Positions 7,688 to 57,785 of a stretch of 64,000 bases of DNA are shown here, one piece after another. The number at the start of each line of letters is the position of its first letter. Within the stretch, counting starts at the first letter, position 1. The notes under the pieces were generated by a model. That model was not told the origin of the DNA. It saw only the letters and a list, made by a program, of their open reading frames with translations, and searched no databases. The position numbers and the translations under genes are program-made. The DNA comes from Hyalangium minutum (lineage in GTDB: Bacteria > Myxococcota > Myxococcia > Myxococcales > Myxococcaceae): the NCBI RefSeq assembly GCF_000737315.1, contig NZ_JMCB01000015.1, forward strand, positions 124,001-188,000, read 5' to 3'.

Positions 7688-7832
7688 AGGAACCGCAGTC
7701 TTCCACAAACCCCGCGCGAGACCCTCTGGCACAGAGATGAGACGGGGCTTTGACGCCGCCTCCCTCGCCGTGCAATCACCCGGGCACAAAGTCCCGGATA
7801 ATAAGTCAAACCCGAAAGAAGGAGGCCGACGA

Positions 7833-8444: not shown

Positions 8445-8468
8445 GCCGCACCTGCTCTAGGAGCCTCC

Positions 8469-28644: not shown

Positions 28645-30275
28645 CGATACCCCCCGTAGCCCTGGTTCAGCAGGGCCTCGAAAGCCTGGGCGTGCTCGCC
28701 GGCGCCTGCGCTGTTCAGGGTTTTCACCGCATCCACCGGGCCCTTGTTGTCCACATCCGGCGCGACGAGCGTGGCGCGCCAGTAGGGGTTGAGGAGGTTG
28801 GGCGGCTCGCTCCAGTGATCGCCGCCGATGACGGGCGCGGAGATGGGGAGGCTGCTGCCGCGGTGGTAGTAGGCGATGCCGGTGGAGAGCGCCGTGGAGA
28901 CGCTGCGGCCCGGCGAGTCCAGCCGCGCGTCCAACTTGTCGGTGCGCGTGAACTCGAGCTTGTAGAGCAGGTTCCACGGGTCCGGTCCGCGCACGCTGGC
29001 GTCGCGGCGGATGACGGCGAAGTTCTTGGGCTGGCCGAAGTTGTTCCTCTCGTTGGCCACCTGGCGCACGTTGTAGTCCAGGAAGGCAGGCCACACTCCC
29101 GGGCAGCTGGACGGCGCGCTGGAGCAAGGGGTGAGGAAGTGGACCTGGGCGTTGTCGTCCTTGCCCCCCATCCACGTGTGCACGGGCTTCGCCCCCCCCT
29201 TCAGCTCCACCTTGATGTCCTCCTTCCCGATGGTCTCGCCCCACGTAGGAGGGCACGGCGGCGCGCCGCCGTGGGCGGTGTGGTTGTAGACGGTATTGAC
29301 ACTGCCTTCGTCCATGGCGGCCGCGGCGGGGGCGTAGGGCGGCATCAGGCTGGCGGCGTCGCCCTCGGAGAAGAACGAGGTCCCCTCACCCCGGGCGATG
29401 GAGACGTGGTCCGGCGGGCGTATCACCCGCAGCAGGTTCTGCTGGTGCGGGGCGTAGTCCTCCATCTTGCGGTGAGTGGTGAAGCGCCAGCCACGGCTGC
29501 CCATGGCGGCGTTGACCGCGTGCGCCACCGTGAGTGGCAAGGGATCGCACACCGCGCCCGAGTCCGTGCAGAGGGCGCCGCCGCTCACCTCGTCCTCGGA
29601 GACTTTGCCCGCGGCCGGCGGTGCGCTCCACTCGCCCCGGGTGCCCCCCTCGGCGATCTTGTCCAGGATGGGCTCGGCGAGCTCCTGGCTGTTCAGCTTG
29701 TCCACCAACCGCCGGTAGACCTCCTGCTGCTCGGCATAGAGCGCGAGCTGGGCCAACTGCATGAAGAACACCTGCCGCCCGGCGGCCGCGTCCATGCCCT
29801 TGAAGATCTTGTCGACGCGGTCATCCTCCTTCTGCAGCTCGTCCTGCAGCTTCTTCAAGTCCTCTAGGCCCTTCTTGCCGCACTTGCACATCTTCGCGCA
29901 GAACTTGTTGGAGGACGCGCAGGGGCAGCCGAAGTCCTTGTTGTACTGGTAGAGCTTCTCGGAGTTCTTGAAGGCCTTCTTCGTGCCATTCAGGTACGAG
30001 CGGTACAGCGTGGTCCAACTGACGAGGCTCTGGGCGCCGAGCTGCGCCACGCCATGGGCGATCTGCGCGCGGCTGAGCACGGCGATGTTGTTGAAGGTGC
30101 GCGCGGTGGCCACCGCGTTGGAGAAGGCGGTGGCGTCCGCGGCCGTCTGCAACTCGATGCGCTCGCGCACCTTGACGGAGAACGACAGCGTCATCACCAC
30201 CATCAGGGCGACCAGCAGCAGCGTGAGGGCGAACAGCAACAGCGTCTGTCCACGGCGGAGGAAGTGCGTGCGCAT
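28641..30275 (-). CDS. TadG-like pilus assembly protein
   Basis: RRG|QTLLLFAL, hydrophobic helix, then RERIELQTAADATAFSNA (Tad N-terminal motif). Confidence 0.8.
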   Translation of the reverse strand: MRTHFLRRGQTLLLFALTLLLVALMVVMTLSFSVKVRERIELQTAADATAFSNAVATARTFNNIAVLSRAQIAHGVAQLGAQSLVSWTTLYRSYLNGTKKAFKNSEKLYQYNKDFGCPCASSNKFCAKMCKCGKKGLEDLKKLQDELQKEDDRVDKIFKGMDAAAGRQVFFMQLAQLALYAEQQEVYRRLVDKLNSQELAEPILDKIAEGGTRGEWSAPPAAGKVSEDEVSGGALCTDSGAVCDPLPLTVAHAVNAAMGSRGWRFTTHRKMEDYAPHQQNLLRVIRPPDHVSIARGEGTSFFSEGDAASLMPPYAPAAAAMDEGSVNTVYNHTAHGGAPPCPPTWGETIGKEDIKVELKGGAKPVHTWMGGKDDNAQVHFLTPCSSAPSSCPGVWPAFLDYNVRQVANERNNFGQPKNFAVIRRDASVRGPDPWNLLYKLEFTRTDKLDARLDSPGRSVSTALSTGIAYYHRGSSLPISAPVIGGDHWSEPPNLLNPYWRATLVAPDVDNKGPVDAVKTLNSAGAGEHAQAFEALLNQGYGGYR

Positions 30276-30278
30276 GGG

Positions 30279-31043
30279 TCACCAGGGGCAGTTCATGGCA
30301 GCGAAGTGCCGGGACTTGGCGGGGGTCATCATCCGCATGGTGAAGGTGGTCTCGATGGGCAGCGTGTACTGCCCACGCCCCACGCGGGCCCGCAGCTCGC
30401 GGGCCATGGCCGCGGGCAGGCGGAAAGTCTCCCTGCGCGAGCGTCTCCAGCGGGCGTCCTCTTCCGCGAGCATCAGGGGGTTGGCCGCGTGGTACTCCAT
30501 GAGCCCCAGCCGTGCGAGGAACATGCGGCTGAGCACCCAGTTGGCGAAGGGGATCTTCAGCGGGAACCAGTAGATCATGCGCGTCTCCAGGCGCATGAGG
30601 TGGCCGGGGCGGTCGAAGGCGCGGTCCTGAGGGGCGGGCGCGAAGCTGCGGCCAACTAGCTCGCGCTGGATCCAGACGATGCTGCCGTCATGGCCGGCAT
30701 CCCTGCGGGCCAGGAAGCGGTGGTCATTGCGCTTGTACTCACCAAAGGCACGGGCGAGCTTGTCCGCAGCGCTTCTGCCCGCAGTGGCGCGGCCCAGGAA
30801 GGAGCGGAACGAGGGCAGCAGTGCCAGCACCGCCGCGTCCTGCATCCGCCCACAGTCCCCGTGCGAGATGCTCCCGGCACGCGTAGCCTGGAAGACGGCG
30901 TACTGCGCCAGCAGGCGGGCCTGCAGCGCCAGGAAGAGCTGCAGGGTGCCCAGGATCAAAAAAACCACCAGCGGCAGCGTCAACGCCGCCTCGACCGCCG
31001 CCTGTCCTGACTGACCCTCACGCGCCCAACCGGGGGTGTCCAT
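30279..31043 (-). CDS. TadE-like pseudopilin
   Basis: SG|QAAVEAALTLPLVVFLILGTLQL...QYAVFQATRAG. Confidence 0.85.
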   Translation of the reverse strand: MDTPGWAREGQSGQAAVEAALTLPLVVFLILGTLQLFLALQARLLAQYAVFQATRAGSISHGDCGRMQDAAVLALLPSFRSFLGRATAGRSAADKLARAFGEYKRNDHRFLARRDAGHDGSIVWIQRELVGRSFAPAPQDRAFDRPGHLMRLETRMIYWFPLKIPFANWVLSRMFLARLGLMEYHAANPLMLAEEDARWRRSRRETFRLPAAMARELRARVGRGQYTLPIETTFTMRMMTPAKSRHFAAMNCPW

Positions 31044-31136
31044 GCGTCATGAGAGACGCAGTGGGGATTTCCCGGCCATACCACCATTGGCCATGGCGAG
31101 GCTCGGCTGGGCTGGACTTCGCGCGGCGTTTCGTTA

Positions 31137-31157
31137 AACATGTTCATTGAACGTGTT
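31137..31157. promoter_or_regulatory. Candidate TetR operator overlapping the tetR -10/start
   Basis: AACATGTTCA-T-TGAACGTGTT inverted repeat (1 mismatch), adjacent to TAAACA. Confidence 0.65.
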
Positions 31158-31791
31158 CAACAAACGCAAGTCACAGAGTGGAACTCGAGCTACCCAGAAG
31201 GAAGCCACCGGGCACGCGGTTCTCCAGGCGGCGCGCGTGGAGTTCGAGCGCGTGGGCTTCGAGGCGGCGAACCTGCGGTCCATCGCGGCGCTCGCGGGGG
31301 TGTCGGCCGGGACGGTGCTCCACCACTATGGAGACAAGCGAGAGCTGCTCCACGCCGCGCTGTTCGATGATCTCGAGCAGACGTTGGCGCGTGCGCTCGC
31401 CGGGCTCGGCAAGGGCTCGCTGGAGGAGCAGCTCTCCGCGCTGACACGCACCGTGTTCGGCTACTACCAGCGCCGCCCCCAGCTCTCGCGCACCCTGCTC
31501 AAGGAGTCGCTCTTCGCCGAGGAGCCCTGGGCCCAGCGGTTCACCGCCCAGGTCGGCCGGGTTCATGGAGCCCTCGCGCAGCTGGCCCAGAAGGCGAGCG
31601 AGCGCGGCGAGCTCCGGCCCAACGTGGACGGTGCGCTGTTCGCCGTCGCGTACTTCTCCTTCTTCTACTTCGCCCTCATCGCATGGGTGCAGGGCGCGCA
31701 TGGCTCACCCATGGAGCTGGTGGATCGCCTGGTTCGCCAGCATCTCGAGGGCCTGCGTCCGGATCCCAAGTCGCGGAGGAGGAAGTCATGA
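31147..31791 (+). CDS. TetR/AcrR family transcriptional regulator
   Basis: HTH GFEAANLRSIAALAGVSAGTVLHHYGDKRELL. The start is uncertain (TTG 31147 or GTG 31153). Confidence 0.9.
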   Translation: MNVFNKRKSQSGTRATQKEATGHAVLQAARVEFERVGFEAANLRSIAALAGVSAGTVLHHYGDKRELLHAALFDDLEQTLARALAGLGKGSLEEQLSALTRTVFGYYQRRPQLSRTLLKESLFAEEPWAQRFTAQVGRVHGALAQLAQKASERGELRPNVDGALFAVAYFSFFYFALIAWVQGAHGSPMELVDRLVRQHLEGLRPDPKSRRRKS

Positions 31792-33581: not shown

Positions 33582-35783
33582 CTACAGGCTGAGCTCGAGG
33601 TTGCCGAGGATGCGCCGTCCCTCCATGCGGTAGTCGAAGGGCAGGTCTCCGGTTCGCACGAGGAAGTCCTCGGTATCGAACAGGTTGGTGACGGAGAGCC
33701 CCACGGAGGACCACACATTGATCTGCAGGCGCGTGTTCACGTCGAAGCGGAGCCAGGCCGGCACGGACTCAGGCCGGGCCTCCCGGTAGGCGGGGGTCTC
33801 GAAGTCTCCGGGCCTGCGCAGGACGGTGCTTTGGTAGCGGCCTTGGAGCGCCAGGGTGAAGCGCCGGATCGAGTAGCTCACCCCCGCCTTGGCCGTGTGC
33901 GCGGGGGCCCAGGTGAGCTGCCGGAGACTGCCCTCGCTGTCGTCATCTGTCTCTCCCAACAAGCGCGCGTAGCTGTAGTTGCCAAAGGCCATCAGCCGGC
34001 CGCGCGTTCCCAGCTCCGCGTCCGCCATCAGCTCCAGCTCCACGCCCGCGGTGTCTCGGGAGAACAGGTTGTTCACCTGGAGCTGCTCATAGCCGATGAG
34101 GTTCTCGTAGCGGGAGACAAAGACGGTGGTTCGTGAGCTCAGGTGCCGGTGGATCAGCCAGTCCGCGCCGAGCTCGAAGGTGGTCACCCGCTCGGGGAGG
34201 ATCGAGTCGATGTCCGTGTCCGCCATCCAGCTGTTGGTGCTGAACAGCTCGGTGGGCGACGGCGCCCGGAACGCGCGGCTGGCCTGGAGCTTGAAACTCA
34301 AGGAGGGGAGCGCGGCGTAGACCAGCGCGAGCCGGGGGCTGAGCTGCTCGTACGAGCGCGCGCTCGGGCGAGCGGTAGGCGCTTCGGGGGCGCGGTAGCG
34401 GAAGAACTTCAGGTCATAGCGCAGGCCCGCGGTCAGCGAGAGGGGCGTGTCCAGCAACTGGCTCCAGGACAGCTGCGCATAAGCCGCCGCGTTGCTCACG
34501 GGCCGGTTGAGGATGCCCTCGTAGAAGGGCCCCAGCTCGACCAGCGTCTCGGAGGGAGGAGAGTCCTCCTCGAAGTTGAGCAGGTCGGCGTTGCTGTAGT
34601 GAACGTGGTCGCCGTTGTACAGGAAGAGGGAGTACTCCACTCCGCCCAGCAGCGAGAGTCGCTCGGCCAGCTCGCCGGAGAGCTGCGCCCGGGTGAAGAC
34701 CTCGTCCACGTGTGTGTCGAGCGTCTCCGTGACGCCGTTGGGGTAGTACCCGTCCAGGGCGCCGCTCGGGTAGAAGCGGATGTTCAGGTCGTAGTCGTGC
34801 CGCTGGAACATGAGCACGTACTCGTGCTGGAGCGGGCGCTCGGGCTGCGAGCGGTAGCTCAGCACCGCGAGGTGGCGGCCCTCGCGGATGGGCTGCTCGG
34901 CATCGGGCGCCCAGCTGAACCAGCCAAGGCCGATTCCCTGCTCCCAGGCCTGCTGGTGGTAGCTCAGCGACAGCCCCTCCAGGGCCTTGCGTGCCTCCAA
35001 CTTGAGGAAGACGTACCGGCTGCCGAGCGGCTCCGAGACGCGGAAGCGCTGGAGCGCGCCTTGGTCGTCCACTCGCCCCGAGCCGTCCGGGGACAGATAG
35101 ATGCTCCCATCCGTGCGCGCGTAGCGGAACCCCAGCACGGTGGAGAGGTGCTCGGAGCGAGAGGCCGCCACCGCCTCCACGCTCGAGGTCCCCTGGTTGC
35201 CGAGCCGCAGGCGCGCCTCGCTGTTGATCTCCAGGCGCTCCTGCTCGTTCAGGGCCTTGGGCGAGGAGATGGTGTTGATGGCGATGATGCCCTGGGTGGC
35301 GCTGGAGCCGTACAGCGCGGAGCCGGGCCCGCGGATGATCTCCACACTTTTGACGAAGAAGAGCGGGGTGATGTCCCAGGTGTACGCGCTGGCGGTGTCG
35401 TGGTCGTTCACCGGCACGCCGTCCACCAGCACCAGCAGGTGGTTGTTGTTCCAGCCCTCTTGGATACCGCGGGCGCCCACCACCGAGCGCTCGAAGTCCC
35501 GGGCGGGGAAGAAGCCCGGCTGGCTGAAGAGGATGTCGTTCAGGCTCGTCCAGCCGAACTGTTGGATCTGCTCGCGGGTGACCAGGGAGGCCACGCCGGG
35601 AGCCTCGCTCGCCTTCTGCCGCTGCTTGGCGGGCGTGGCGAGCTCCAGCTTCAGCAACTCCTCGAGCGACAGCTTTTGGGACCAGTGCGAGTCCTCCCCG
35701 GCGGGAGCGGGAGCCTGCTGGGCGGAGGCGGGCGTGGCGGCCAGGGCGACCCCAAGCAACAGCGGGATGAGGGCAGGGCGCAT
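33582..35783 (-). CDS. TonB-dependent receptor (YfiR-associated type)
   Basis: Signal peptide, SLEELLKLEL..EAPGVASLVTREQI plug start, VEIIRGPGSALYGS, and C-terminal VTNLFD..GRRILGNLELSL. Confidence 0.9.
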   Translation of the reverse strand: MRPALIPLLLGVALAATPASAQQAPAPAGEDSHWSQKLSLEELLKLELATPAKQRQKASEAPGVASLVTREQIQQFGWTSLNDILFSQPGFFPARDFERSVVGARGIQEGWNNNHLLVLVDGVPVNDHDTASAYTWDITPLFFVKSVEIIRGPGSALYGSSATQGIIAINTISSPKALNEQERLEINSEARLRLGNQGTSSVEAVAASRSEHLSTVLGFRYARTDGSIYLSPDGSGRVDDQGALQRFRVSEPLGSRYVFLKLEARKALEGLSLSYHQQAWEQGIGLGWFSWAPDAEQPIREGRHLAVLSYRSQPERPLQHEYVLMFQRHDYDLNIRFYPSGALDGYYPNGVTETLDTHVDEVFTRAQLSGELAERLSLLGGVEYSLFLYNGDHVHYSNADLLNFEEDSPPSETLVELGPFYEGILNRPVSNAAAYAQLSWSQLLDTPLSLTAGLRYDLKFFRYRAPEAPTARPSARSYEQLSPRLALVYAALPSLSFKLQASRAFRAPSPTELFSTNSWMADTDIDSILPERVTTFELGADWLIHRHLSSRTTVFVSRYENLIGYEQLQVNNLFSRDTAGVELELMADAELGTRGRLMAFGNYSYARLLGETDDDSEGSLRQLTWAPAHTAKAGVSYSIRRFTLALQGRYQSTVLRRPGDFETPAYREARPESVPAWLRFDVNTRLQINVWSSVGLSVTNLFDTEDFLVRTGDLPFDYRMEGRRILGNLELSL

Positions 35784-35787
35784 GGGC

Positions 35788-38145
<2,358 letters not shown>

Positions 38146-38147
38146 GC

Positions 38148-38774
38148 TCAGGGCTCCTCTTGGCGGGGCTCGACGAGGCGGGACAAGCTCAGCAGCCCCG
38201 CATCCAGGTCCGCTCCCTCGGCCCGGGCGGCCGACAGGTGGATGAGGATGACGGGGGTGTTTCCCTGGCGTTCCAGGCCAATGGCCAGCCCCTGGGTGAT
38301 TTGCTTCTCGTGGCCGGCGATGGACAGGACGGAGAGCCGCCGCGTCACCTGGGCGATGCGCTCGGACTCGGATTCGAGCCCTTCACAGACATAGAGGGCC
38401 ACAGCGTGCTTTTCGGAGAGCTCGGTCTGGAGCTGATTGCTGTCACTGAAGCCAATGCGCACCACGTGCAGGGGCCGCCCCGAGATGACCCTCCCACGTG
38501 CCGCCAGCTCCAGCGCGTTGCTGAACTCGCGCCCCTGGCTCTCCGACGTCGCGTCTCCTTGGCGGTGGGCAACGGCGAGGATGAGCGGAGGAGGGTGCTG
38601 TCCCATCCTCCGGTCGTAGGCCAGGACTCGCACCAACATGGACGCCCTCAGGGTGGCAGGCAGGTCCGCGCCCCGAGCCGCCAGTGGAACCCCGATCAGC
38701 GCGATGAGCAGCAAGGAGCTCGGATAAAGCCAACGAACGCGACTGTTCAGGGCCCGATGAGGCAACGAGGACAT
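38148..38774 (-). CDS. YfiR family (DUF4154-like) periplasmic protein
   Basis: Signal peptide and LRASMLVRVLAYD..ALYVC..VLSIAG..GLAIGL..PVILIHLSAARAEGADLDAGLLSLSR, which resembles YfiR/DUF4154. Confidence 0.8.
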   Translation of the reverse strand: MSSLPHRALNSRVRWLYPSSLLLIALIGVPLAARGADLPATLRASMLVRVLAYDRRMGQHPPPLILAVAHRQGDATSESQGREFSNALELAARGRVISGRPLHVVRIGFSDSNQLQTELSEKHAVALYVCEGLESESERIAQVTRRLSVLSIAGHEKQITQGLAIGLERQGNTPVILIHLSAARAEGADLDAGLLSLSRLVEPRQEEP

Positions 38775-38988
38775 CTGGACACCCCCCCGCCCTAAAGTAC
38801 ACGGAGAGTGAATCGATAGGGCTGGCTCAGAATACCCGGCTGTCTTGCTTTAAACAGGAACCCACGGGTGGCGCCGCAATGCCTACCCAATCAAAATCAA
38901 ATCAACCCACTCGAGGGACGAGATAAGGAATCTCGTGCGGCGTGGCGCCTCCCTCCCAAGCCCGAGCGAATCTGGCTAATCTCCTCTC

Positions 38989-40077
38989 GTGGCCCTCGTT
39001 CCCGACGCACTCCAGCAGCTCCGTACCTTCGCGAAGCGAAGGCTCGCCCATCCTCATGGCCAGCAGCTCTGCCACTACCTGGACGGCGTTGCCTGGGAGG
39101 AGGCCCTGCAGGACAGCCTCCTCGTCCCCGAGGACATGAGCCTCGGCTTCTACACACCCTTTTGGGCGGACTACACCGAAGCGCAGCGGCTCGCGCTGAA
39201 TCACTGGGTGTACATCCTGAAGTACTACCGCATCAGCGACGGCGAGCGCTTCGTCATCACCACCAACGAGTGCGTGGCGGACTTTCTCCAAGGGGTGGAT
39301 CCGGAGGTGGCCGGCCTGCTGCGCCTGGAGGCGGCAGAGGAGCGCGACCACATCGCCGCCTTCGAGCGGGTGCGTGCCGGGATTGTTCGCCACCACGGCT
39401 TCGAAGGTGTGCGCATGCCCGTCAAGCCCCTGCGTGCGCTCGTCACGTCACCGCGCACGCTGCACTTTCTCCTGAGGCACTTCGGCGCGGACTTCATCGT
39501 CACCTATTACCTGGGCCGCGGCCTCGTGAACCACATGGGCAAGGCCTTCGAGACGAAGGTGGCGGATCTGGACATCGGCCACCCTGCCTTCAAAGGCATC
39601 TCCCGGTTCCACACCGTGGACGAGAACCGCCACATGGCCGTCTCGCGGATGATGGCCGCGTGCACCTACGCGCTCGTCTCCCGGAGGAGTGAGGCCAGCC
39701 CCCTCTACGAGGTGCTCAACCAGAACCTGCGGGAAGCCGTTGTGGGCTACACGCTCTCGGACCGCCTCACCAAGGAGCAGGAGCGCGCCATGTCCCGGCT
39801 CGTGCTGCCTCAGATGCGCGCGCTGCGCGACGTTCCTACCCAGCGGCTCGAGGCCACCATCGACGCCCACTTCACTGGGCTCAGCGGCATGGAGCGCGCC
39901 AAGAACACGTACATGCCGCGCTTCAATCAGCGGCTCCTCGACCAGGCCTGTCTCTCCCCCAAGGAGAAGCGCGACCTGTTCGAGCTCGTCTGCTCGCTGC
40001 AGGGTAACCTGCGCTTCTTCCCCGAGGGCTACGTGCCTGGGGCAGAGGTCCCGGCGATGTCTCTCGAAGAGACATGA
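38989..40077 (+). CDS. Ferritin-like dimetal-carboxylate enzyme, AurF superfamily, with CylC-halogenase-type motifs
   Basis: YYRISDGERFVITTN, EAAEERDHIAAF, YYLGRGLVNHMGK and ISRFHTVDENRH. GTG start 6 nt after TAATCT. Confidence 0.8.
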   Translation: MALVPDALQQLRTFAKRRLAHPHGQQLCHYLDGVAWEEALQDSLLVPEDMSLGFYTPFWADYTEAQRLALNHWVYILKYYRISDGERFVITTNECVADFLQGVDPEVAGLLRLEAAEERDHIAAFERVRAGIVRHHGFEGVRMPVKPLRALVTSPRTLHFLLRHFGADFIVTYYLGRGLVNHMGKAFETKVADLDIGHPAFKGISRFHTVDENRHMAVSRMMAACTYALVSRRSEASPLYEVLNQNLREAVVGYTLSDRLTKEQERAMSRLVLPQMRALRDVPTQRLEATIDAHFTGLSGMERAKNTYMPRFNQRLLDQACLSPKEKRDLFELVCSLQGNLRFFPEGYVPGAEVPAMSLEET

Positions 40078-42062
40078 CACAGCTCCGTGGAGGCGCACTT
40101 CCACGCGCGAGTCTCGTGGTAGGAAGCGCTTCCCACCATGCGAATGGAACTCCGAGTCCTGTCTCTCTGTCTGACGGACGAGGTGGACTGGTCCATGGAC
40201 GTAGCGGCGTTCCGCGCACCCGAGAGCCTGGCCCCGCGCGCCCCGGGCCGGGCGGCCCGTGCATGCTGGAGGGAAGGAGCCCGTCGGGTCATCAGGAACA
40301 GGAGCGTCAGAGCCACCATCCAGGCGCTCCCGCTGCCGGCCGCCGCGCATCCTCCACCCTTTGGCGTCTCTAGCGCCGGAGGCTCCGCCGGTTCCGACGG
40401 CTCCGATGGCTCCGATGGAGGCGCCGGGGGACAGGTGAGGGGCTCCGTTGAAGGCTCCCTCTCCATCCGGAACACGGTATCGGTCACCACCAAGTGGGGA
40501 CGGCCCTCCATCCACTTCAGCAGGTTGGCCGTCGTGCCGGCGACGGGAACTGACGGACTCCCGGGACCCGCGAGGTAGTACTGGCTGTTCATCACGTAGA
40601 CGACCGTCCCGTCCGGTCCGAGCATCACGGGAGCCGAAGGAAGGCCCCAGGAGGACACCTGCTCCTCGACCCCAGCCGGTGAGCGGAGCCACACCTGATT
40701 CACGCCCCCTCCGAGTCGCGTGAAGGCCACCCAGCCCTTCGACAGCAAGAAGCTGGCGCTCCCCGGCGTGTCGGAGAGGACGTGCCGCTGGCCAGCTCGT
40801 AGGAGCACCGTCTCACTGACCTGGTTGGGTTTTTCGAGCAGGTAGACCTGATCGTCGCCCTCGGCGATGGGAAACTTCACAGTGCCCTCGGCTTCGGCAA
40901 ACACCTGCTCGACCTGCTCATTCCGGTAGCGAAGGAGCAGGTTTCTGGTACTGCCGAGGAGGGTTCCATCCTCGCCGAGCCAGTTCGCCGCAAATTCCGA
41001 CGGGAGAGAGGTCCTCGTCCCCGTGGAGAAATTGAGGAGGCCCCAGCGTTGATTGGCCTCGAAGTAGGCCAGGTGGCTTCCCGTGATCCGGTAATAGCGC
41101 GAGAGTGGGCTATAGAGGTTCCAGGAGAACTCGGCCAGGGAGCTGCGCTGCCCATCCTGGACCTGAAGGAGCTCCATGTTGCGGGTGCCCAAGATCGCTC
41201 CTCCTGGCATCAGGTGCCCGATGTCATAGGAGCGGTTGCAGCTCAGGCCGCAGATGTAGCTGTTGATCTGGAGGTTCTCCAGGAGCGTGTCGATCTGTCC
41301 CGAGGTTCGGTCCAGCACTCGGGCCCTGCGTTGCTCGTCGACGAAGAGCACCCGCTGCGCATCGAAGTCGATCACCGAGCCGGGGACGCTCACCACCGGA
41401 ACGAGCCGCCGACTGTTCTCCACATAGATGGATCGCACCACCTCGCTGCTGCTCTGGGAGCCGGAGAGGGCCCTCAGGCGGATACGAACCCATTTGCCCG
41501 CGTATTCCGCCAAGCACAGTTCCTGGTCGAGCCTACCCTTGGCACTCAGGCTCGGCGGGCCTGGGAGCGGAGTGCCAGGAGTCCCTCGGGGATCCACCAC
41601 CTCGAAGTTGGCACGCACCTCACATCCCTGGGGATGATCGTCTTCACAGCTCGCCGTGAGCCGGATCGAGGGCTGCAGCACGAGCCCACTGGCGGGCGTC
41701 GAGATTGTAAGCCGTGGCGGCCGATCGACCTGGAGCAGCCGTGAGACCCGGGCTTCCGTGCCATGAATATCCCGCGCCGTGACGGTGAGCAGGTGCTCTC
41801 CGTAAGGCACCCCATCGATGGAGAGGATCGCTCTCGGCCGGAGATCGACTGGCATCGGGAAGACCTTGCCCCCGAACTCCGCCTGCATCGAGCTGAGCTG
41901 GTACACGGACTGGACGGAGACCAGGATCTCGAAGTCACTCTCGATCAGGGTTTGAGCGGGCCAGTCGAGGCGGAGCTCGATCTGAGCTGAGGCGACTCCA
42001 CTGGCCAGCAGACAGAGTGGGAGCAGCAGCAAAGGGATGCGTCGGAGTGGAGCAGGTCGCAT
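40029..42062 (-). CDS. Secreted beta-rich protein with MYXO-CTERM-like sorting signal
   Basis: Signal peptide, Ig-like and propeller-like regions, PSEP linker, and GGGCAAAGSGSAWMVALTLLFLMTRR followed by an 83-aa extension. Confidence 0.75.
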   Translation of the reverse strand: MRPAPLRRIPLLLLPLCLLASGVASAQIELRLDWPAQTLIESDFEILVSVQSVYQLSSMQAEFGGKVFPMPVDLRPRAILSIDGVPYGEHLLTVTARDIHGTEARVSRLLQVDRPPRLTISTPASGLVLQPSIRLTASCEDDHPQGCEVRANFEVVDPRGTPGTPLPGPPSLSAKGRLDQELCLAEYAGKWVRIRLRALSGSQSSSEVVRSIYVENSRRLVPVVSVPGSVIDFDAQRVLFVDEQRRARVLDRTSGQIDTLLENLQINSYICGLSCNRSYDIGHLMPGGAILGTRNMELLQVQDGQRSSLAEFSWNLYSPLSRYYRITGSHLAYFEANQRWGLLNFSTGTRTSLPSEFAANWLGEDGTLLGSTRNLLLRYRNEQVEQVFAEAEGTVKFPIAEGDDQVYLLEKPNQVSETVLLRAGQRHVLSDTPGSASFLLSKGWVAFTRLGGGVNQVWLRSPAGVEEQVSSWGLPSAPVMLGPDGTVVYVMNSQYYLAGPGSPSVPVAGTTANLLKWMEGRPHLVVTDTVFRMEREPSTEPLTCPPAPPSEPSEPSEPAEPPALETPKGGGCAAAGSGSAWMVALTLLFLMTRRAPSLQHARAARPGARGARLSGARNAATSMDQSTSSVRQRDRTRSSIRMVGSASYHETRAWKCASTELCHVSSRDIAGTSAPGT

Positions 42063-42162
42063 GGACGGGCTCGAAGAAGCTTGACAGGGCCCGGCCGCCC
42101 GACCGGACACGATGGCCGGAGCTCCTGGCAAAAGTACCACACGGAGCACTCGGCCTCCAGGC

Positions 42163-42282
42163 GGCAGGTCTCTCCTTCGGCGGGACCGCTGGGTCTGCTA
42201 GAGTCCTGCGGTGGGGCGGCTCTGGGTGTGCTTCCTTCTCACCCTACTGATGGTAGTGCATCCGCTCTCCGCCCCGCTTTTT
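42163..42282 (+). ncRNA. Candidate structured leader RNA upstream of the RING-TerD gene (two stem/TCCTTC/hairpin units)
   Basis: Two units, each a stem enclosing TCCTTC plus a hairpin. The second unit is closed by a 9-bp stem followed by U5. Folded by eye only. Confidence 0.45.
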
Positions 42283-42299
42283 CCCCCCTCGGAGACGCC

Positions 42300-44915
42300 G
42301 TGACTTCGCTCACGCTCGATCTGCCCCAAGCCACGGGGACCCCCGCGGCCCTGTTGCTGCGCAAGACATCGCGCGTCTTTGTCCCCGCCGTCCCCCACGG
42401 CAAGCCGTCGGTCCAAGGGCGCGAGGGCGTGCGCGCGCTCGAGGCGGACCTGCTCGGGCTGGGCTACACGCTCTCGGGTCCGCTCCAGGATGCGCTCGCC
42501 GCGCTCCCCCCGGATGCGCTCGCGGAGCTGGGCCGATTCGTCTTCTCCACACTTGCCCAGATGCTGGGCCGGGATCGGGCCTTCGTGCCCCTCTTCACCG
42601 GCTTTCCTCACAGCGTCCCGCAGGACTCCGATTCGTTCTTCATCCAGCGCATGCGGGTGTGGCTCTTCCAGTCGCCCGAGCAGCCCTGCCTCCAGTGCGG
42701 GAAGGTGGCCACGGTGAAGGCGCTCGATCCCTGCGCCCATGCCGTCTGCACGAGCTGCTTCGATCCACGCCAGTTCAACGCATGTCCCATCTGCCACCGG
42801 CGCGTCTCTCCCGGGCAGCCCTACTTCCAGCCGGTGGCTCAACCCTCCACGCGGCGGCTCCATGTGCTCCGGCAAGGGCGCATGACCCGGTTGTCGCTCT
42901 CCACGGACCTGGACTCCGCCGCGCGGGAGTTGCTGGAGCGGCTGCTCTCCCGCGCCACCGTCCTTCGTCCGGATGAGCTCGAGGTGGTGGGCACGCTCGT
43001 GTTCCACTTGGGCCTGAAGGTGCTCGGCTGGCTTCCGCCGCGGATCCCCGTGAAGGAGACGCTGGCCCAGGTCGTCGGTGGCCTGCTGCGGCGTGAGCCG
43101 GCCGCCGCGGCGGATGTGCTGGGGGGCACCGCCGCGCATTTGAAGACCGCGACGGACTTCCTCCGCGTGCTCGTCGCGTGGGCGGGTGGCAACCCAGACC
43201 TCACGGTCAAGGTGCCCCTCAAGAGCTACCCTCGCTCGCTGCGGCGCGCGGTGCTGAAGGCCCTGGAGGCGCTCCCGCTGCTGAACCTCACCGAGGATGT
43301 GCACCGCCACCCGGGCCTCTGGAAGGCCATTGCGGGCCAGCTCCACGTCTTCGAGCGCTGGCAAGAGCACCCGAACGTCGCCCTGGCCTTTGCCACCTTG
43401 CGCGGCACGGTGGTGGAGCCCCATAGCGAATTCAGCCATGCGCTGTTGGCCCAGGCCCGCGAGTACCGTGACTCTTTCCTGCCCCAGGCTGTGGAGGGAG
43501 GGCTCACGATCCGCTTCCGCTCGTGGAGTTCGCAGGTGGAGGAGGCGCTGAAGCGGCGGGACATGAACGGTGTGTTGCGGCTGCTGCGCCAGCGTCCCGG
43601 GGAGCTGCTGCGCAGGCTGGACCATGTGGCCCGCACGGCTCTCAGGGATGAACAAGGGGTCTTCCACCAGCGAGAACTCGTCACCAGCCTGGAGGCGGTG
43701 GCACCGCGCGCGGCGCCTGCGCTGCTCCTCACCGCCACTGCACATCTGCGCCGCCGACATGCCCCCTTCGCGCGGCGGGTGTTCTTCCCCAAGGGAGAGG
43801 CCACCCACGCCTGGGGCACCGAGGACCGGCGGCCGCTGCTGCCCGGGGACGCCATCGGCGAGCTCGTGGGTCCCCTGGAGCGCGAGCTGCTCCGGCGTGC
43901 GGAGCGGCTCCCCACATTGCCGCAGGCGGTGCTGGACGAGGCGCTCGCTGACCTGCTCGTGCCCCTCGCGGAGAAGACCGCGTCCCGAGCGCTCGTGGCG
44001 GTGCCTCGTGGGAGCGTGCTGGACCTGCCGCAAGGCGAGCACCTGCGCTTCTTCGTGCACTGGACGGAGCCCGCGGGGACGCGCGTGGATCTCGATCTGT
44101 CCGTGGCGCTCTACGACGCGAAGTGGTGGCTCGTCGATCTGTGCGACTACACGAACCTGCGCCTCGCGAACGACGCGGCCGTGCACTCGGGAGACATCAC
44201 CTCGGGGGCTCCTCCTCTGGGAGGCGCCGAGTTCCTGGACGTGCACGCGCCGGCGCTGCTGAAGAAGGGCGTACGCTACGCGGTGCCGGTGATCTTCTCC
44301 TTCAACAGCGTGTCCTTTGACCGCATGCAGGATGCCTTCGCGGGCTTCATGGTGCGCGACAGAAAGGACGGTCCTCACTTCGATGCGCGCGAGGTCGAGC
44401 AGCGCTTCGACCTGCAGGGGAACGCGAAGATCGCCGTGCCGCTCATCATCGACCTCGAGGCACGCAAGCTGCGCTGGGTGGATGTGAAGGTGCCGGCCGA
44501 CGACCTCTTCCACAGCGTCGCGCGCGCCCGGGGCGATCTTGCCCACTTGGGGAAGGACACCCTGGCCTACTTCGGGACGGGCGCGAGGCCGACCCTCTGG
44601 GAGCTGGCCTGTCTGCACGCGGCGGCGCGCACCCGCACGGTGCACGTGCGCCGCCGGGACGGGAACGTGGTGGTTCTCACCCGTGCACCCGACGAGGACA
44701 CCCGCCACTTCCTCTGGAGGCTCCGCCGCCTGGAGGGCGCCCGTGGGGTGCCACGGCTGACACTTCAGCCCGCGCCCGCTTTCTTCGCGGGACTCTCGGA
44801 CGAGCCCGCTCTGCCCCAGGGCAGCGAGGGCTATGCGCTCCGCTTCCGTCACACGGAGGCGGATCAGGTCAGGCGGCTCGCAGCGGGCGATCTCGTCGCG
44901 GCGCTGCGGCCCTAG
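42300..44915 (+). CDS. Prokaryotic RING finger + TROVE-like helical + TerD-domain protein (MXAN_6230/SCO0854-like, Prok-RING_4 type)
   Basis: GTG with GGAGA SD. C-x2-C-x11-C-x-H-x2-C-x2-C-x8-C-x2-C at 42687-42794, RPGELLRRLD, and TerD motifs DLDLS, HSGD, EFLDV. Confidence 0.85.
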   Translation: MTSLTLDLPQATGTPAALLLRKTSRVFVPAVPHGKPSVQGREGVRALEADLLGLGYTLSGPLQDALAALPPDALAELGRFVFSTLAQMLGRDRAFVPLFTGFPHSVPQDSDSFFIQRMRVWLFQSPEQPCLQCGKVATVKALDPCAHAVCTSCFDPRQFNACPICHRRVSPGQPYFQPVAQPSTRRLHVLRQGRMTRLSLSTDLDSAARELLERLLSRATVLRPDELEVVGTLVFHLGLKVLGWLPPRIPVKETLAQVVGGLLRREPAAAADVLGGTAAHLKTATDFLRVLVAWAGGNPDLTVKVPLKSYPRSLRRAVLKALEALPLLNLTEDVHRHPGLWKAIAGQLHVFERWQEHPNVALAFATLRGTVVEPHSEFSHALLAQAREYRDSFLPQAVEGGLTIRFRSWSSQVEEALKRRDMNGVLRLLRQRPGELLRRLDHVARTALRDEQGVFHQRELVTSLEAVAPRAAPALLLTATAHLRRRHAPFARRVFFPKGEATHAWGTEDRRPLLPGDAIGELVGPLERELLRRAERLPTLPQAVLDEALADLLVPLAEKTASRALVAVPRGSVLDLPQGEHLRFFVHWTEPAGTRVDLDLSVALYDAKWWLVDLCDYTNLRLANDAAVHSGDITSGAPPLGGAEFLDVHAPALLKKGVRYAVPVIFSFNSVSFDRMQDAFAGFMVRDRKDGPHFDAREVEQRFDLQGNAKIAVPLIIDLEARKLRWVDVKVPADDLFHSVARARGDLAHLGKDTLAYFGTGARPTLWELACLHAAARTRTVHVRRRDGNVVVLTRAPDEDTRHFLWRLRRLEGARGVPRLTLQPAPAFFAGLSDEPALPQGSEGYALRFRHTEADQVRRLAAGDLVAALRP

Positions 44916-46427: not shown

Positions 46428-48209
46428 TCAGTCCGGGTCTGGATGACCATCCACCCGCAACTGAAAGAGGAAATAGGGAGGAATGCAGGCGCCTTGAGTC
46501 TCCGACACCTTGGCGCAGAGATAGTCGTCGCGGCAGAGCTCCGTCTCGCTGCAGGACTGCAGCGCGCCCGGCCGCACATTTTCTCTCAAGCATTGCGCGA
46601 ACGGCAGCCGGCCCCGTGACAGGCAGTGGTTGAACGTCTGGAGCACCGCGATCGACCCGCAGACCTCACCCTGCCGCAGGTTCTGGCAGTTGCCCGAGCA
46701 CATCCCTCCGGGAAAGCCTACAGACGTGTCCTCGCAGATGCGGCCGGAGCCGCAGCGGAGCTCTTCGCCGGGCGAGATGGAATCGGTCTGGGGATTCTCA
46801 TGGTGTTGCACTTGGCCGGGCTGGCAGAAGGAGCCCGCCTGCGGCTCTTGGGGCATGCACACGCCCGTGGGGCTCACCCGGGAGTCGCTCACGAGCGCGC
46901 GGCACTCGAGCCCCGCCGAGCAGCCCCAGTCCCGGAAGGACGGATCGCCCAGCCCGCAGTGCGCTCCGAGGTCTCCCTTCTCCTCGGCGGCACGGGTGGA
47001 CGGCGCGCGGAACGGCGCAGGCTCCTGCTCGGACAGCACTGCTTGGAAGAAGCGCTCGCGCCGCGGTTGATCGAGCAGGAAGTGAGGCGAAGCCGCGACG
47101 AAGATGGAGTTTACTGGCTCCGTCTCGCGCCGGTCCTTCCCCAGGAAGTGGAAGCCCGCCACGGTTCGGCCCTGGTGGCAGCCCGAGCAGGACAGATCGT
47201 TCAAGCGCTGCAGGAGGCCCTGGGGCGAATGCAGCGTCTTCCTGCCCGTGAAGGAGAGCTGGGCGAAGTCGCTCTCCACGAAGAGCTGGTGAAAGGGCGC
47301 ATTGGCCAGACGATGGGAGCCAGCCAGGGCCACCGAGCGTGCACGCCGGGCCAGGAACTCCTCTGGGAGCATGGCCACGCCCTCGTCGATCTTCGCCAGG
47401 TTCTGGGGATCGGCGATCCACGTCCGCAGCTTCTCCCGCAGGCCCGGCACCGCCTGGATGCGTGCCACATCGGGCGTATTCTCGAGCGGAGCCAGCCGGA
47501 AGACCTCCCCTTTCTTCTGGAAGACGCGGAGGAGGTACTCCGCGTAGCCGCCGAAGTCGGGCCGCACGGTGGACGGCCAGCGCACGGACTGCAGGTTGAG
47601 CTCGATCGACTTGAGCTCGAGTTGTCCCAGCGAGGCCGGAGAGATGGCGCTGGAGTCCTGCGAGAGCGCCTGTTGGAGCTCCTGCCAGCGCCTTGCCGCG
47701 TCTGCGCACTGGCCCTCGCGCCCCGGTCCCCAGAAGACCACGTTCAAGGTGAGCGGCAGTCGGGAGTAGATCGGCTCCTTCCCTGAAGTGCGGTAGGCCA
47801 GACGGTAGATGAAGCGGAGCTCTCCACAGTGTTCGGGGTGGAAAGGCGCCCGGTCGAGGCGGTTCACGATGCCGACCAGCTCGAAGAAGGCCTGGGGTGA
47901 CCGCAGCCAGTCGCTGTCCAGGAGGCGGTGCGGCGTGCGCATGGAGGTGCTGAGCAGGCGATCGTGGCTTCGCAGCTCCGAGAGATCCTCGGTCACGCTC
48001 TCCGCGATCGAGCGGTAGGCGGCGTTCTCGAACAGGGCCTCGTTGCTGGGAACTGGAGCAGGTGCCCCGAATGCCAGGCGGGCCAGGTCGAAGCCGTTCC
48101 TCTCCCATTTTTGCAACAGGACGGGATCGTCCACCCTCAGAGGCACCTGCGTGCACAGGGAAGCCAAGCCCAGCAGGACTGCCAGGTGAGGCAATGAGTG
48201 GATTCCCAT
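46428..48209 (-). CDS. Hypothetical exported protein with one CxxCH motif and a Cys-rich C-terminal domain
   Basis: Hydrophobic N-terminus, SCSGCHQ, and a C-terminal third with many Cys. Confidence 0.7.
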   Translation of the reverse strand: MGIHSLPHLAVLLGLASLCTQVPLRVDDPVLLQKWERNGFDLARLAFGAPAPVPSNEALFENAAYRSIAESVTEDLSELRSHDRLLSTSMRTPHRLLDSDWLRSPQAFFELVGIVNRLDRAPFHPEHCGELRFIYRLAYRTSGKEPIYSRLPLTLNVVFWGPGREGQCADAARRWQELQQALSQDSSAISPASLGQLELKSIELNLQSVRWPSTVRPDFGGYAEYLLRVFQKKGEVFRLAPLENTPDVARIQAVPGLREKLRTWIADPQNLAKIDEGVAMLPEEFLARRARSVALAGSHRLANAPFHQLFVESDFAQLSFTGRKTLHSPQGLLQRLNDLSCSGCHQGRTVAGFHFLGKDRRETEPVNSIFVAASPHFLLDQPRRERFFQAVLSEQEPAPFRAPSTRAAEEKGDLGAHCGLGDPSFRDWGCSAGLECRALVSDSRVSPTGVCMPQEPQAGSFCQPGQVQHHENPQTDSISPGEELRCGSGRICEDTSVGFPGGMCSGNCQNLRQGEVCGSIAVLQTFNHCLSRGRLPFAQCLRENVRPGALQSCSETELCRDDYLCAKVSETQGACIPPYFLFQLRVDGHPDPD

Positions 48210-48239
48210 GGGAGCACTTTAGACGGAACATGTTCCTGC

Positions 48240-51179
48240 ATGCGCAAGCTCATCATCGCGGCAGCGATTCTGGTGGTCGGGGGATTGGCGCTCTTCGTTC
48301 TCCTGGACTCGGAGACCTCTGGGGATACCCCTGTGGCCTCGCCTGCGGGCTCCGAGCAGCCCTCGTCACAGCCCGCAGCCACGGCGAAGCGGGCGGGCAC
48401 GGTGCTGCAGCCGGAGACCCCGGAGGATGTGGGCGCGAAAGGCACCGCCAGCGCGGGCAGCACGCCGTCTCTGGCCCAGGCGCCCTCGGAAGAGGATGGA
48501 GTGCTGGAGGTCGAGGTGCTCGCGGGCGATCGGCCCGTGCCCGGCGCCAGCGCACGGCTGTATTGGCGAGGCGCTCGTGATCCCAGGCTCGGGGAGGTGT
48601 CCTGGCGATTGGCCAGCTCTGGCAGCACGGACGCCCAAGGGCGCGTGAAGCTCGCGTCGAGGCCCGGTGGATACATGCTCGCAGTGCGCGCTCAAGGTTC
48701 CGCGCTGCTGCTCCGCGACGTGGTGCGCCCCTATGGCGAAGCGCTCACGCATCTTCGCGTCACGCTGGAGGTACCGCAGACCCTCACCGGCCGCACGGTG
48801 GAGCAGGGCACCCAGGAGCCGCTGCCCCTCGTGGAGCTTGTCCTCACGGCTCAAGGGCCCTCGCTCGCGCCCTGGCAGCGCGCCGAGGCTCCCGCCGAGG
48901 AGCGTGTGTACGCGTCGAGCGATGAGCGCGGCCAGTTCCGTGTCGACGGGCTGGCTCCAGGCACTTACCAACTTGAGGCGCGAGCCCCAGGCCACGCTCG
49001 GACGGTGCAGCGCAACGTGCGAGTCCCTGCCTCGGGGCCGCTCACGGTGGCCCTCCAGGCCGCTGGCGTCATCGAGGGCTTCGTCGTCGACTCCCAGGGC
49101 CAGCCCGCCGCGGACGCCGAGGTGCAGGTGGGCGGACGCTCGCCCCAGGCCGTCACTACGGGGCAAGGCGGTGGTTTCTCTCTCGAGGTGGAGCCTGGGG
49201 CCCACCTCCTCTCCGCGCGGCGGGGAGAGGAGGCCGGCTCGCTGGAGAAGCCCCTCACCGTGAAGGCGGGGCAGACGGTGAGGGATGTGCGGCTGCGCCT
49301 CGGGAAGGGCTCGGTGCTGGAGGGGCGCGTGGTGGCCCGCGCCACGGGGGCTCCGATCGTGGGCGCCAACCTCTCGGTCAGCCCCACGGGCGGCGCGGGA
49401 GACTCGGGGCAGGCGGTGACGGACAGCACGGGCCACTTCTCCGTCGGAGGGCTGGCCCCCGGCAGCTATGATCTCGGAGTCAGCGCTCCAGGCTTCTCTT
49501 CGCTCTCTCGCCGGGGGCTGACGGTGACCACGGGCGAGCGCTTCCCGCTGGAGCTCTCGCTCACGGGCACGGGTGTGGTGGAGGGGCGCGTGAAGGACAG
49601 CGCCGGACAGCCGGTGGTCGGCGCGCGGGTGGAGGGAGGATCGCGCTGGGGCGGCTCGCTGGGCAACACGATGGCCGAGTCCCGCACTGATGCCGAGGGA
49701 CGCTACCGGCTGGAGGGGCTCGCCGCGGAGACCGTCGATATCACGGCCCGGAGGGAGGGCGAGGCGCTGGGAACCAGCCAGCAGGTGGAGGTGCGTGAGG
49801 GCGGCACGTCGCAGCTGGACTTCACGCTGCAGGACACCGGCACCGTGGAAGGGGTGGTGCGGGCTGCTCGCGGTGCGCTTCCCTCCGAGCCGATGGTCGT
49901 CATGGCGTCCCGGCGAGGGGGCATGTTCTTCAGCATCAACGGTTCCGGGATCGGCCGGGCGGAGGTGGATGCGGCGGGCAGCTTCCGGATGACGCTCCCG
50001 CCGGGCCGGTACAACCTGCAGCCGCAGCTCACGGCGCGCCGGAGCTTCATGAGCACCGGTGGGTCCCAGGTGCAGGTGGAGGCGGGGAAAACTGTCCGGG
50101 CCGAGCTGACCTGGCAGGACAATGAGGCCTCGGGGGAAGGAGTGCGGGGCGTGGTTCTCGAGCCCGAGGGTGCTCCCTCACCGGGCGCCTTCGTCACGGT
50201 GGCTTTGGAAGGAGGCATGCCGGGCATGCGCATGATGGCTCCCACGGACGATGAGGGGCGCTTCTTCGTCAGCATGCCTTCGATGGGGACCGCCGGTGCT
50301 TCACATCGCTTCCATGTGAGCGCGCGCAACGGGGGACGCGCAGGCGAGGCGCTCGGGGTGAAGCTGGGCGAGCAGGAGGTGGTGGTGAAGCTGCGGCCCG
50401 GAGGCGCGGTGCGAGGCCAGGTGGTGCGCTCCAGCGGCGCGGCCGTGCAAGGCTTCACCCTGACGGTCCAGCCCCAGGGTTCGGAGCGCATGGGGTGGGG
50501 CACTCGCACCTGGGAGTTCCCGGGCGATCGCTTCGAGCTGAGGGATGTGCCCGCCGAGTCCCTCAAGCTGGTGGCTCGGACGGCGGACGGCGCGGGCGGA
50601 GAAGCCTTGTCGTCCCCCTCCACGGGGGCTGTGTCCGAGGTGGAGATCACCCTGCGGCCCACGGGCACGATTCGAGGCCGCGTGGTGTTGGAGGCCACGA
50701 AGGAGCCCGTCGGTGGGGCGCTGATCTTCCTTGAAGGAGAGCGTCGGCCCGGAGCGGATGTGCCCACGTCGAGCGATGGCCGCTTCACCCTGGAGGGCGT
50801 GTCCGCGGGCGAGCACGAGCTGCTCATCGTTCCGGGCGGCATGCGGACGCCCGAGCGCAAGAAGGTGACGTTGAGCGAGGGTCAGGTGCTGGACCTGGGG
50901 GACGTCGTGCTGAGCCCTCCTCGGACGCCTCCTGGCTCCGTGGGGTTGATTGTGGAGCCACAGGGCAGCCAGGTCGCCATCTCCGAGCTGATGCCCGGGA
51001 GCCCCGCGGGGAGCGCGGGGCTGCAGGTGGGGGACGTGCTGGTGGAGGTGGATGGCTCGCCCATCACAGCGCCTCAAGAGGCCTTCATGAGGCTCCGGGG
51101 AGCGCCGGGATCGCCTGTGGTCATCAAGGTGCGGCGCGCGGGTGCGGAGAAGTCTTTCACCGTCACCCGCGCGCCCTGA
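48240..51179 (+). CDS. Membrane-anchored carboxypeptidase-regulatory-like repeat protein with C-terminal PDZ domain
   Basis: N-terminal TM, repeated GxVxDxxGxPV...GxY beta-sandwich units, and PDZ PGSPAGSAGLQVGDVLVEVDG. Confidence 0.85.
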   Translation: MRKLIIAAAILVVGGLALFVLLDSETSGDTPVASPAGSEQPSSQPAATAKRAGTVLQPETPEDVGAKGTASAGSTPSLAQAPSEEDGVLEVEVLAGDRPVPGASARLYWRGARDPRLGEVSWRLASSGSTDAQGRVKLASRPGGYMLAVRAQGSALLLRDVVRPYGEALTHLRVTLEVPQTLTGRTVEQGTQEPLPLVELVLTAQGPSLAPWQRAEAPAEERVYASSDERGQFRVDGLAPGTYQLEARAPGHARTVQRNVRVPASGPLTVALQAAGVIEGFVVDSQGQPAADAEVQVGGRSPQAVTTGQGGGFSLEVEPGAHLLSARRGEEAGSLEKPLTVKAGQTVRDVRLRLGKGSVLEGRVVARATGAPIVGANLSVSPTGGAGDSGQAVTDSTGHFSVGGLAPGSYDLGVSAPGFSSLSRRGLTVTTGERFPLELSLTGTGVVEGRVKDSAGQPVVGARVEGGSRWGGSLGNTMAESRTDAEGRYRLEGLAAETVDITARREGEALGTSQQVEVREGGTSQLDFTLQDTGTVEGVVRAARGALPSEPMVVMASRRGGMFFSINGSGIGRAEVDAAGSFRMTLPPGRYNLQPQLTARRSFMSTGGSQVQVEAGKTVRAELTWQDNEASGEGVRGVVLEPEGAPSPGAFVTVALEGGMPGMRMMAPTDDEGRFFVSMPSMGTAGASHRFHVSARNGGRAGEALGVKLGEQEVVVKLRPGGAVRGQVVRSSGAAVQGFTLTVQPQGSERMGWGTRTWEFPGDRFELRDVPAESLKLVARTADGAGGEALSSPSTGAVSEVEITLRPTGTIRGRVVLEATKEPVGGALIFLEGERRPGADVPTSSDGRFTLEGVSAGEHELLIVPGGMRTPERKKVTLSEGQVLDLGDVVLSPPRTPPGSVGLIVEPQGSQVAISELMPGSPAGSAGLQVGDVLVEVDGSPITAPQEAFMRLRGAPGSPVVIKVRRAGAEKSFTVTRAP

Positions 51180-57566: not shown

Positions 57567-57785
57567 GGGTCTTCCCTCGGGGGACGGAACCTGTTTCCTG
57601 GTGAATTGAAGAAATCCCAGGAGACTGGATCTGGCCCGGGGCAAAAAGTGGCCTCCGCGCTCTCCATGGTGCTGGGTGGTGTGTGGGGGGGGACTCTCTG
57701 AGCCCACCCACCCCTGTGGGCCTCGGGCGGGCAAACCTGTCCGACAAGTGGACCGGTTCGCCCTGCGCCGGGCCGGAGCGGCGGC

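Follow-up and report, generated by a model that had tools for sequence, protein, structure and literature searches.

In cyanobacteria, chlorinated alkyl chains are made mainly by diiron halogenases. The 64,000-nucleotide stretch of DNA analyzed here (hereafter the window) carries a gene that the preliminary description of the locus presented as a stand-alone, putative CylC-type halogenase in a myxobacterium. Does the encoded protein belong to this family and, if so, is it a halogenase?

The gene, its host and its family

The gene lies at 38989..40077 on the forward strand and encodes a protein of 362 aa. It starts with a GTG, which fits the N-termini of the homologues, has the same GC3 as the neighboring genes (0.87), and was also called by NCBI on contig JMCB01000015.1 (assembly GCA_000737315.1), the source of the window, where it occupies 162989-164077. 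JMCB00000000 corresponds to Hyalangium minutum DSM 14724T (PMC5441343), and the ribosomal protein L13 of the window falls in a 90% identity cluster with those of H. gracile and H. versicolor. The identity of the contig and the clustering of L13 thus show that the gene was correctly attributed to a myxobacterium. It also stands alone, as had been proposed: it is monocistronic, and its upstream and downstream neighbors are divergent and convergent, respectively. Scans of the divergent intergenic region upstream (214 bp, 38775..38988) for sigma-70-like promoters, terminators, and Rfam elements detected none, and the surroundings of the gene likewise showed no riboswitch, promoter consensus, or terminator. 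Its product would be a soluble, cytoplasmic protein.

The gene itself has a precomputed match (E <= 1e-5) to the recent Pfam family PF28091, named "CylC-like". A large protein search retrieved 86 homologues of about 360 aa, all annotated as hypothetical, and all the full-length ones match PF28091. They come nearly all from Myxococcota, including Melittangium boletus and many MAGs of "Archangium"/Myxococcaceae, with a single one from Planctomycetota. When searching 1.84 billion representatives with phmmer, we obtained just 50 clusters at E <= 1e-3, and the tail of the list is made of cyanobacterial proteins of 427-470 aa with QE[RK]xHIRxF and HFLDEAFH motifs. The E values to cyanobacterial CylC-type proteins in this library of 1.84 billion range from 1e-5 to 2e-4. 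One such protein, P0125 (E 1.1e-5), is encoded in a locus with the order lipase-FAAL-desaturase x2-ACP-PKS-ACP-CylC-thioesterase, which is a bona fide CylC-type setting. The hhalign comparison of the family of the window protein (A1, 46 sequences) with 35 cyanobacterial CylC-type proteins (A3) gave a probability of 98.7% (E 2.4e-16) over 200 columns, leaving the C-terminal third of the 362-aa protein unaligned. In contrast, the AurF Pfam model (PF11583) reached only 14.1 bits (E 0.026, residues 190-234), below its cut-off of 29.6. An NCBIfam scan and a PDB sequence search with the protein returned nothing useful, and no AurF or CylC structure was retrieved by PDB sequence searches with the protein, the family profile, or the CylC-type profile. 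The Pfam match, the profile alignment, and the sub-threshold AurF score bear out the earlier assignment: as judged from sequence, this is a dimetal-carboxylate protein of the CylC family and not of the AurF family.

Fold and putative active-site residues

The AF2 model computed with the family alignment is all-helical (mean pLDDT 93.5, pTM 0.91), with core helices at residues 64-100, 105-136, 167-192, and 199-230. In this order, the helices hold E86; E114, E117, E118, and H121; R177, N181, H182, and E188; and H208, D211, E212, and H215. Foldseek ranked AurF (2jcd, 3chh) and CmlI (5hyh) first among PDB structures (TM 0.45-0.54, E ~4e-3), followed by R2-like ligand-binding oxidases and RNR R2. 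The family profile touches the RNR R2 6zjk (E 0.025), with the E, ExxH, and ExxH ligand motifs in register. A four-helix-bundle core bearing E...ExxH twice is present according to the AF2 helices and the Foldseek matches, and the predicted fold is that of the ferritin-like diiron superfamily. CylC, BrtJ, ColD, and NocO are in the same Pfam family and have the same predicted four-helix core. Neither the profile search nor the fold search found a CylC-family structure in the PDB copies searched, and the AF2 model of P0125 is equally remote from solved structures.

CylC itself is difficult to handle (PMC12101540). Wang et al. described nine residues that are conserved in 242 CylC homologues and all essential in NocO (E94, Q128, E129, H132, E252, H279, D282, E283, and H286); they make up the motifs QExxH and HxxDExxH, and the Q128A variant is inactive (PMC12101540). 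From the published mutagenesis primers (PMC12101540), we derived the NocO sequence in the vicinity of these residues and mapped it on the window protein by hhalign and by a joint MAFFT alignment.

The four motifs pointed out in the preliminary description are all present as written. The motif of core helix 1 (YYRISDGERFVITTN, Y79-N93, 39223..39267, forward strand) includes E86, a predicted metal ligand that keeps NocO E94, together with Y79 and N93, which are common to CylC-type proteins. The motif of core helix 2 (EAAEERDHIAAF, E114-F125, 39328..39363, forward strand) has the form ExxEExDH, where the predicted ligands E118 and H121 keep NocO E129 and H132, and E117 takes the place of the halogenase-signature Gln, NocO Q128. 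The D120 of this motif is invariant only in the clade of short proteins described below. In the segment of core helix 3 (YYLGRGLVNHMGKAFE, 39505..39552, forward strand), which includes the motif Y173-K185 (YYLGRGLVNHMGK), both hhalign and MAFFT align R177, N181, K185, and E188 with R253, N257, K261, and E264 of P0125, while G178, H182, and G184 are found only in the short clade. The motif of core helix 4 (ISRFHTVDENRH, I204-H215, 39598..39633, forward strand) contains HxxDExxH, here H208-T-V-D211-E212-N-R-H215. Its predicted ligands H208, E212, and H215 keep NocO H279, E283, and H286, and D211, predicted to be in the second sphere, keeps D282. The region of this last motif is the sole stretch touched by the AurF Pfam model.

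With E188 as the equivalent of NocO E252, the protein keeps eight of the nine essential residues and has the HxxDExxH halogenase motif. The exception is the Gln, replaced by a Glu (E117) that is invariant in the 46-sequence family. A halogenase-annotation pipeline from 2026 gives ExxQExxH plus HxxDExxH as the family signature, and the first half of it is not found in the window protein, which has E114-A-A-E117-E118-R-D-H121.

Across 46 homologues of 24-91% identity, the ligand residues do not vary, and the motifs are therefore not there by chance. Over the same range of identities, N71, H72, Y79, N93, K146, R177, N181, H182, and H294 are also strictly invariant. Active sites that act on a defined substrate typically show such invariance of a full ligand set and of many additional polar residues, which argues against a non-catalytic or ligand-binding ferritin-like protein, be it R2lox-like or involved in metal handling. 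The latter reading would fit a gene devoid of pathway context and the presence of R2lox and RNR R2 among the fold and sequence matches, since these proteins have a ferritin-like diiron or Mn/Fe fold. The weak profile match to 6zjk and the Foldseek matches reflect a relation at the superfamily level only; the extra His (H208) and the R/N/K/E residues of helix 3 are CylC-like. We regard a non-catalytic role as extremely unlikely.

The preliminary description had noted the lack of a Glu in the third helix. This holds for the segment RGLVNHMGK itself, but an invariant Glu, E188, is found three residues on (GKAFE). It is conserved just as in halogenases, and the argument built on a missing helix-3 Glu fails. 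In the hhalign and MAFFT alignments, E86 and E188 are matched to E102 and E264 of P0125. We considered a pairing of "VNHM" in the window protein with "KNHE" in NocO, which would put a Met in place of E252, and rejected it because both methods give E188. The helix-end registers for E188 are about 9 residues apart between the AF2 models of the window protein and P0125, and contradict each other.

The spacing of the motifs had been read as CylC-like, which is not what we observe. The distance between the His of helix 2 and the His of helix 4 is 87 in the window protein and 84 in AurF, against 147 in NocO and 153 in P0125. CylC-type proteins have an insertion of ~55-75 residues between helices 2 and 3, corresponding to residues 155-242 of P0125, where pLDDT is lower; hhalign leaves a gap over it. 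Their helix 3-4 loop is also 7 residues longer than that of the window protein in the hhalign alignment. In other words, the 362-aa protein lacks the helix 2-3 insertion and falls short of the halogenase-type size of ~430-470 aa.

An AurF-like spacing raises the question of an arylamine N-oxygenase akin to AurF of Streptomyces thioluteus or CmlI (PF11583; 2jcd/3chh, 5hyh). These are the nearest solved structures and the best structural matches, with similar length and ligand spacing, HxxDExxH, and an acidic residue ahead of the helix-2 ExxH (E117 where AurF has D135). In UniRef, the homologue of Melittangium boletus is even named "Aminobenzoate oxygenase". At the sequence level, the protein has each of the seven positions that make up the AurF 3-His/4-carboxylate set (E86, E118, H121, E188, H208, E212, and H215), as do halogenases. 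The sequence relation remains below the Pfam threshold, 14.1 bits against 29.6, and concerns the HxxDExxH stretch only; AurF and CmlI were not found by the family profile among PDB sequences, and the Foldseek scores given above are low. The contexts of the motifs in the window protein, LALNHW, SDGE, EERDHIAAF, and ISxxH, match those of CylC-type proteins and not those of AurF. There is no pathway for aminoarenes or nitro compounds among the window ORFs near the gene. Hence, N-oxygenation of the AurF/CmlI kind seems very unlikely.

The short ExxEExDH clade and its possible chemistry

To place the E117 substitution in context, we counted the two states of the helix-2 motif in the motif-bearing sequences from the large protein search and the phmmer match lists. 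ExxEExxH was found in 114 sequences of 330-405 aa, nearly always as ExxEExDH, and ExxQExxH in only 8, namely CylC-type proteins and two others (P0117 and P0123). The ExxEExDH form is invariant in the whole short clade. Measured over 339 core columns, identity to CylC-type proteins is ~18% for the window protein, compared with 44% within the short clade and 57% within the CylC-type. In a midpoint-rooted NJ tree, the Q-types form one clade and the E-types the remainder, which hints that the Q state is derived. These comparisons place the 362-aa protein outside the halogenase clade, in a small short clade found mostly in Myxococcota and Planctomycetota. A scan of one genome per GTDB species identified at least 29 loci, 24 of them in MAGs of Myxococcota, 4 in Planctomycetota, and one unclassified; this number is a lower bound, since the scan relied on two peptide patterns.

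Our literature search found no paper describing this clade. Eusebio et al. reported that CylC homologues outside cyanobacteria are rare and "mostly deltaproteobacteria" (PMC8406957). To be counted, a BLAST match to CylC/BrtJ needed at least 25% identity and an E below 1e-19 (PMC8406957). The window protein would not qualify, given its core identity of ~18% and phmmer E of ~1e-5. The supplements of that study contain no myxobacterial accessions (PMC8406957). The short ExxEExDH clade is already within PF28091.

The two groups have in common the invariant residues N71, H72, Y79, E86, N93, E114, E118, H121, F125, R177, N181, E188, H208, D211, E212, H215, and S219. They differ in several positions adjacent to the ligands, compared here as alignment columns and not from coordinates. 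Position 120 is D in the short clade and variable in CylC-type proteins; position 178 is G instead of Y/F, 182 is H instead of M/A/L, 184 is G instead of L, 209 is T instead of L/F, and 214 is R/H/Q instead of F. In the window protein itself, H182, G178, G184, T209, and R214 replace hydrophobic residues. The columns indicate that the short clade is more polar beside the ligand residues than the CylC-type.

How do these results bear on the possibility of a genuine CylC-type radical halogenase that, with no dedicated FAAL or ACP, chlorinates an acyl-ACP or lipid of primary metabolism at an unactivated carbon? The protein is in the same Pfam family, its profile has a 98.7% match to BGC-embedded CylC-type proteins, and it retains eight of the nine NocO-essential residues, including HxxDExxH and E188, along with the helix-3 residues R177, N181, and K185 common to halogenases. 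On the other hand, it has ExxEExDH where CylC-type proteins have ExxQExxH, and loss of the Gln inactivates NocO. In addition, core identity is just ~18%, the helix 2-3 insertion is absent, and polar residues replace hydrophobic ones at the site-adjacent columns. FAAL/ACP/PKS or Rieske genes are missing from the context of the gene, the host belongs to the myxobacteria rather than the cyanobacteria, and the distribution of the clade is patchy, without a partner gene. We therefore think that acyl halogenation of this type is unlikely, and that the protein acts in trans on a primary acyl-ACP, as the preliminary description suggested, is a guess. The motif, the missing insertion, and the polar columns do not support the halogenase label that the gene had been given.

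We favor another reading, which we consider reasonably probable: an orphan ferritin-like diiron O2-activating oxidase or oxygenase of a new CylC-like subclade. This reading builds on what was observed of family membership, fold, conservation of the residue set, separation of the clade, and absence of partner genes. Two Fe (or Mn/Fe) ions would be held by E86, E118, H121, H208, E212, and H215, with E117, D211, and E188 in the second sphere. A non-dedicated ferredoxin/flavodoxin system might reduce the cofactor, which would then activate O2, and the activated center would oxidize a substrate, probably not carrier-tethered, for whose delivery there is no dedicated FAAL/ACP pair. Candidate outcomes are hydroxylation, desaturation, N-oxygenation, or halogenation. 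In polarity, this substrate probably exceeds a plain alkyl chain, because H182, D120, T209, and R/H/Q214 replace the hydrophobic residues of halogenases beside the ligands.

Among these outcomes, we consider a non-halogenating oxidation likelier than halogenation. To our knowledge, all characterized members of PF28091 are halogenases, which counts against this preference. CylC is predicted to leave one coordination site open, its helix-3 Glu lying beyond the first sphere. The window protein keeps the helix-3 pattern R-x3-N-x3-K-x2-E, and may thus retain the same proposed open halide coordination site. Furthermore, a Gln is also found at the Q position in an RNR R2 (QEEIH, 6zjk), and Q versus E at this position may therefore not decide the chemistry.

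More speculatively, and with doubts on our part, the short clade could represent another type of diiron halogenase, one that works independently of a carrier protein on substrates that are free or polar, or else a non-halogenating sister or ancestor of CylC. If the latter, the state of position 117 (E/Q), H182, and the insertion would reveal a switch from oxygenation to halogenation, much as an Asp/Ala switch did for mononuclear Fe/2OG halogenases.

The protein is compact, stand-alone, and confidently modeled. Its source, H. minutum DSM 14724, is a type strain that can be cultured, and a homologue is present in Melittangium boletus DSM 14713. This makes it a good candidate for structural studies and for E/Q swaps with NocO. 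It could yield the first experimental structure of the family core and serve as a natural comparator to understand what makes such centers halogenate rather than oxygenate. It is also a warning that not every PF28091 match is an acyl halogenase: the short clade lacks ExxQExxH, and caution is in order when annotating such matches.

Genomic surroundings

The window is core genome, with genes for L13/S9, AdoHcy hydrolase, UvrD, BamD, two T2SSE-type ATPases, and Tad pilin-like proteins, as well as a 2200-aa subtilase and a MXAN_6230/SCO0854 RING protein. The absence of FAAL, ACP, and PKS genes noted earlier holds for every sizeable ORF of the 64 kb, among which we found no PKS, NRPS, FAAL, ACP, Rieske, or desaturase gene. 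There is no conserved neighbor across the 30+ related loci: clustering the neighbors of 35 loci revealed only lineage-level synteny and generic families (histidine kinases, Ser/Thr kinases).

Upstream and divergent, an apparent operon on the reverse strand (33582-38774) comprises genes for a YfiR/HmsC-like DUF4154 periplasmic protein (38148..38774), a CHASE8/HAMP/PAS hybrid histidine kinase/response regulator (35788..38145), and a TonB-dependent receptor (33582..36017). Further away, TadE-like and TadG-like (Flp pilus assembly) genes (28641-31046, reverse strand) are divergent from a gene for a TetR-family regulator (31138-31791). Downstream, the convergent gene at 40029..42149 (reverse strand) encodes a 706-aa secreted protein, and 49 nt of its ORF are shared with the 3' end of the CylC-like gene. 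At aa 598-623, this protein carries a MYXO-CTERM-like tail (GGGCAAAGSGSAWMVALTLLFLMTRR), which is followed by ~83 further residues. The extension past the tail may result from a lost stop codon or a frameshift; the stop is the same in the NCBI gene call, and NCBIfam gave no MYXO-CTERM match in the protein. At 41991-44915 on the forward strand, a gene matches the equivalog model of the MXAN_6230/SCO0854 family prokaryotic RING-domain protein over its full length (1041 bits). The subtilase gene (51183-57785, reverse strand) encodes a Peptidase_S8 domain with an I9 propeptide, then 13 Big_7 Ig-like domains, and adjoins a gene (48198-51179, forward strand) whose 993-aa product combines five CarboxypepD_reg domains with a PDZ domain at the C-terminus.

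Some related loci have arrangements of their own. The gene of one short-clade member, 51% identical to the window protein (P0087, gene 7808-8872), overlaps at its start by 4 nt the end of a gene (7035-7811) with weak Fer4_13 and Lactamase_B_5 matches, itself preceded by a methyltransferase gene. The product of gene 7035-7811 could be a dedicated electron donor or partner; the arrangement occurs in this single contig. In two MAGs of Myxococcota (L021, 3557-6614; L018, 3791-7372), the short-clade gene has a glycosyltransferase-like gene upstream and a same-strand classical SDR gene directly downstream, families that were assigned by reading the sequences and not by a Pfam scan. This arrangement is not conserved at the other related loci, and a candidate second paralogue in these two MAGs was rejected as a spurious low-complexity ORF. 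In Planctomycetota, YaaA is found upstream of the short-clade gene. Finally, the QExxH-type CylC-like protein P0117 (391 aa; L007, 7542-8717, and also L008) is encoded next to an ABC transporter, a 54-aa ORF, and three ATP-grasp ligases of the MvdD type. This locus looks like a graspetide/microviridin-type RiPP cluster, which suggests that the diiron halogenase-like enzyme P0117 may act on a peptide instead of an acyl chain.
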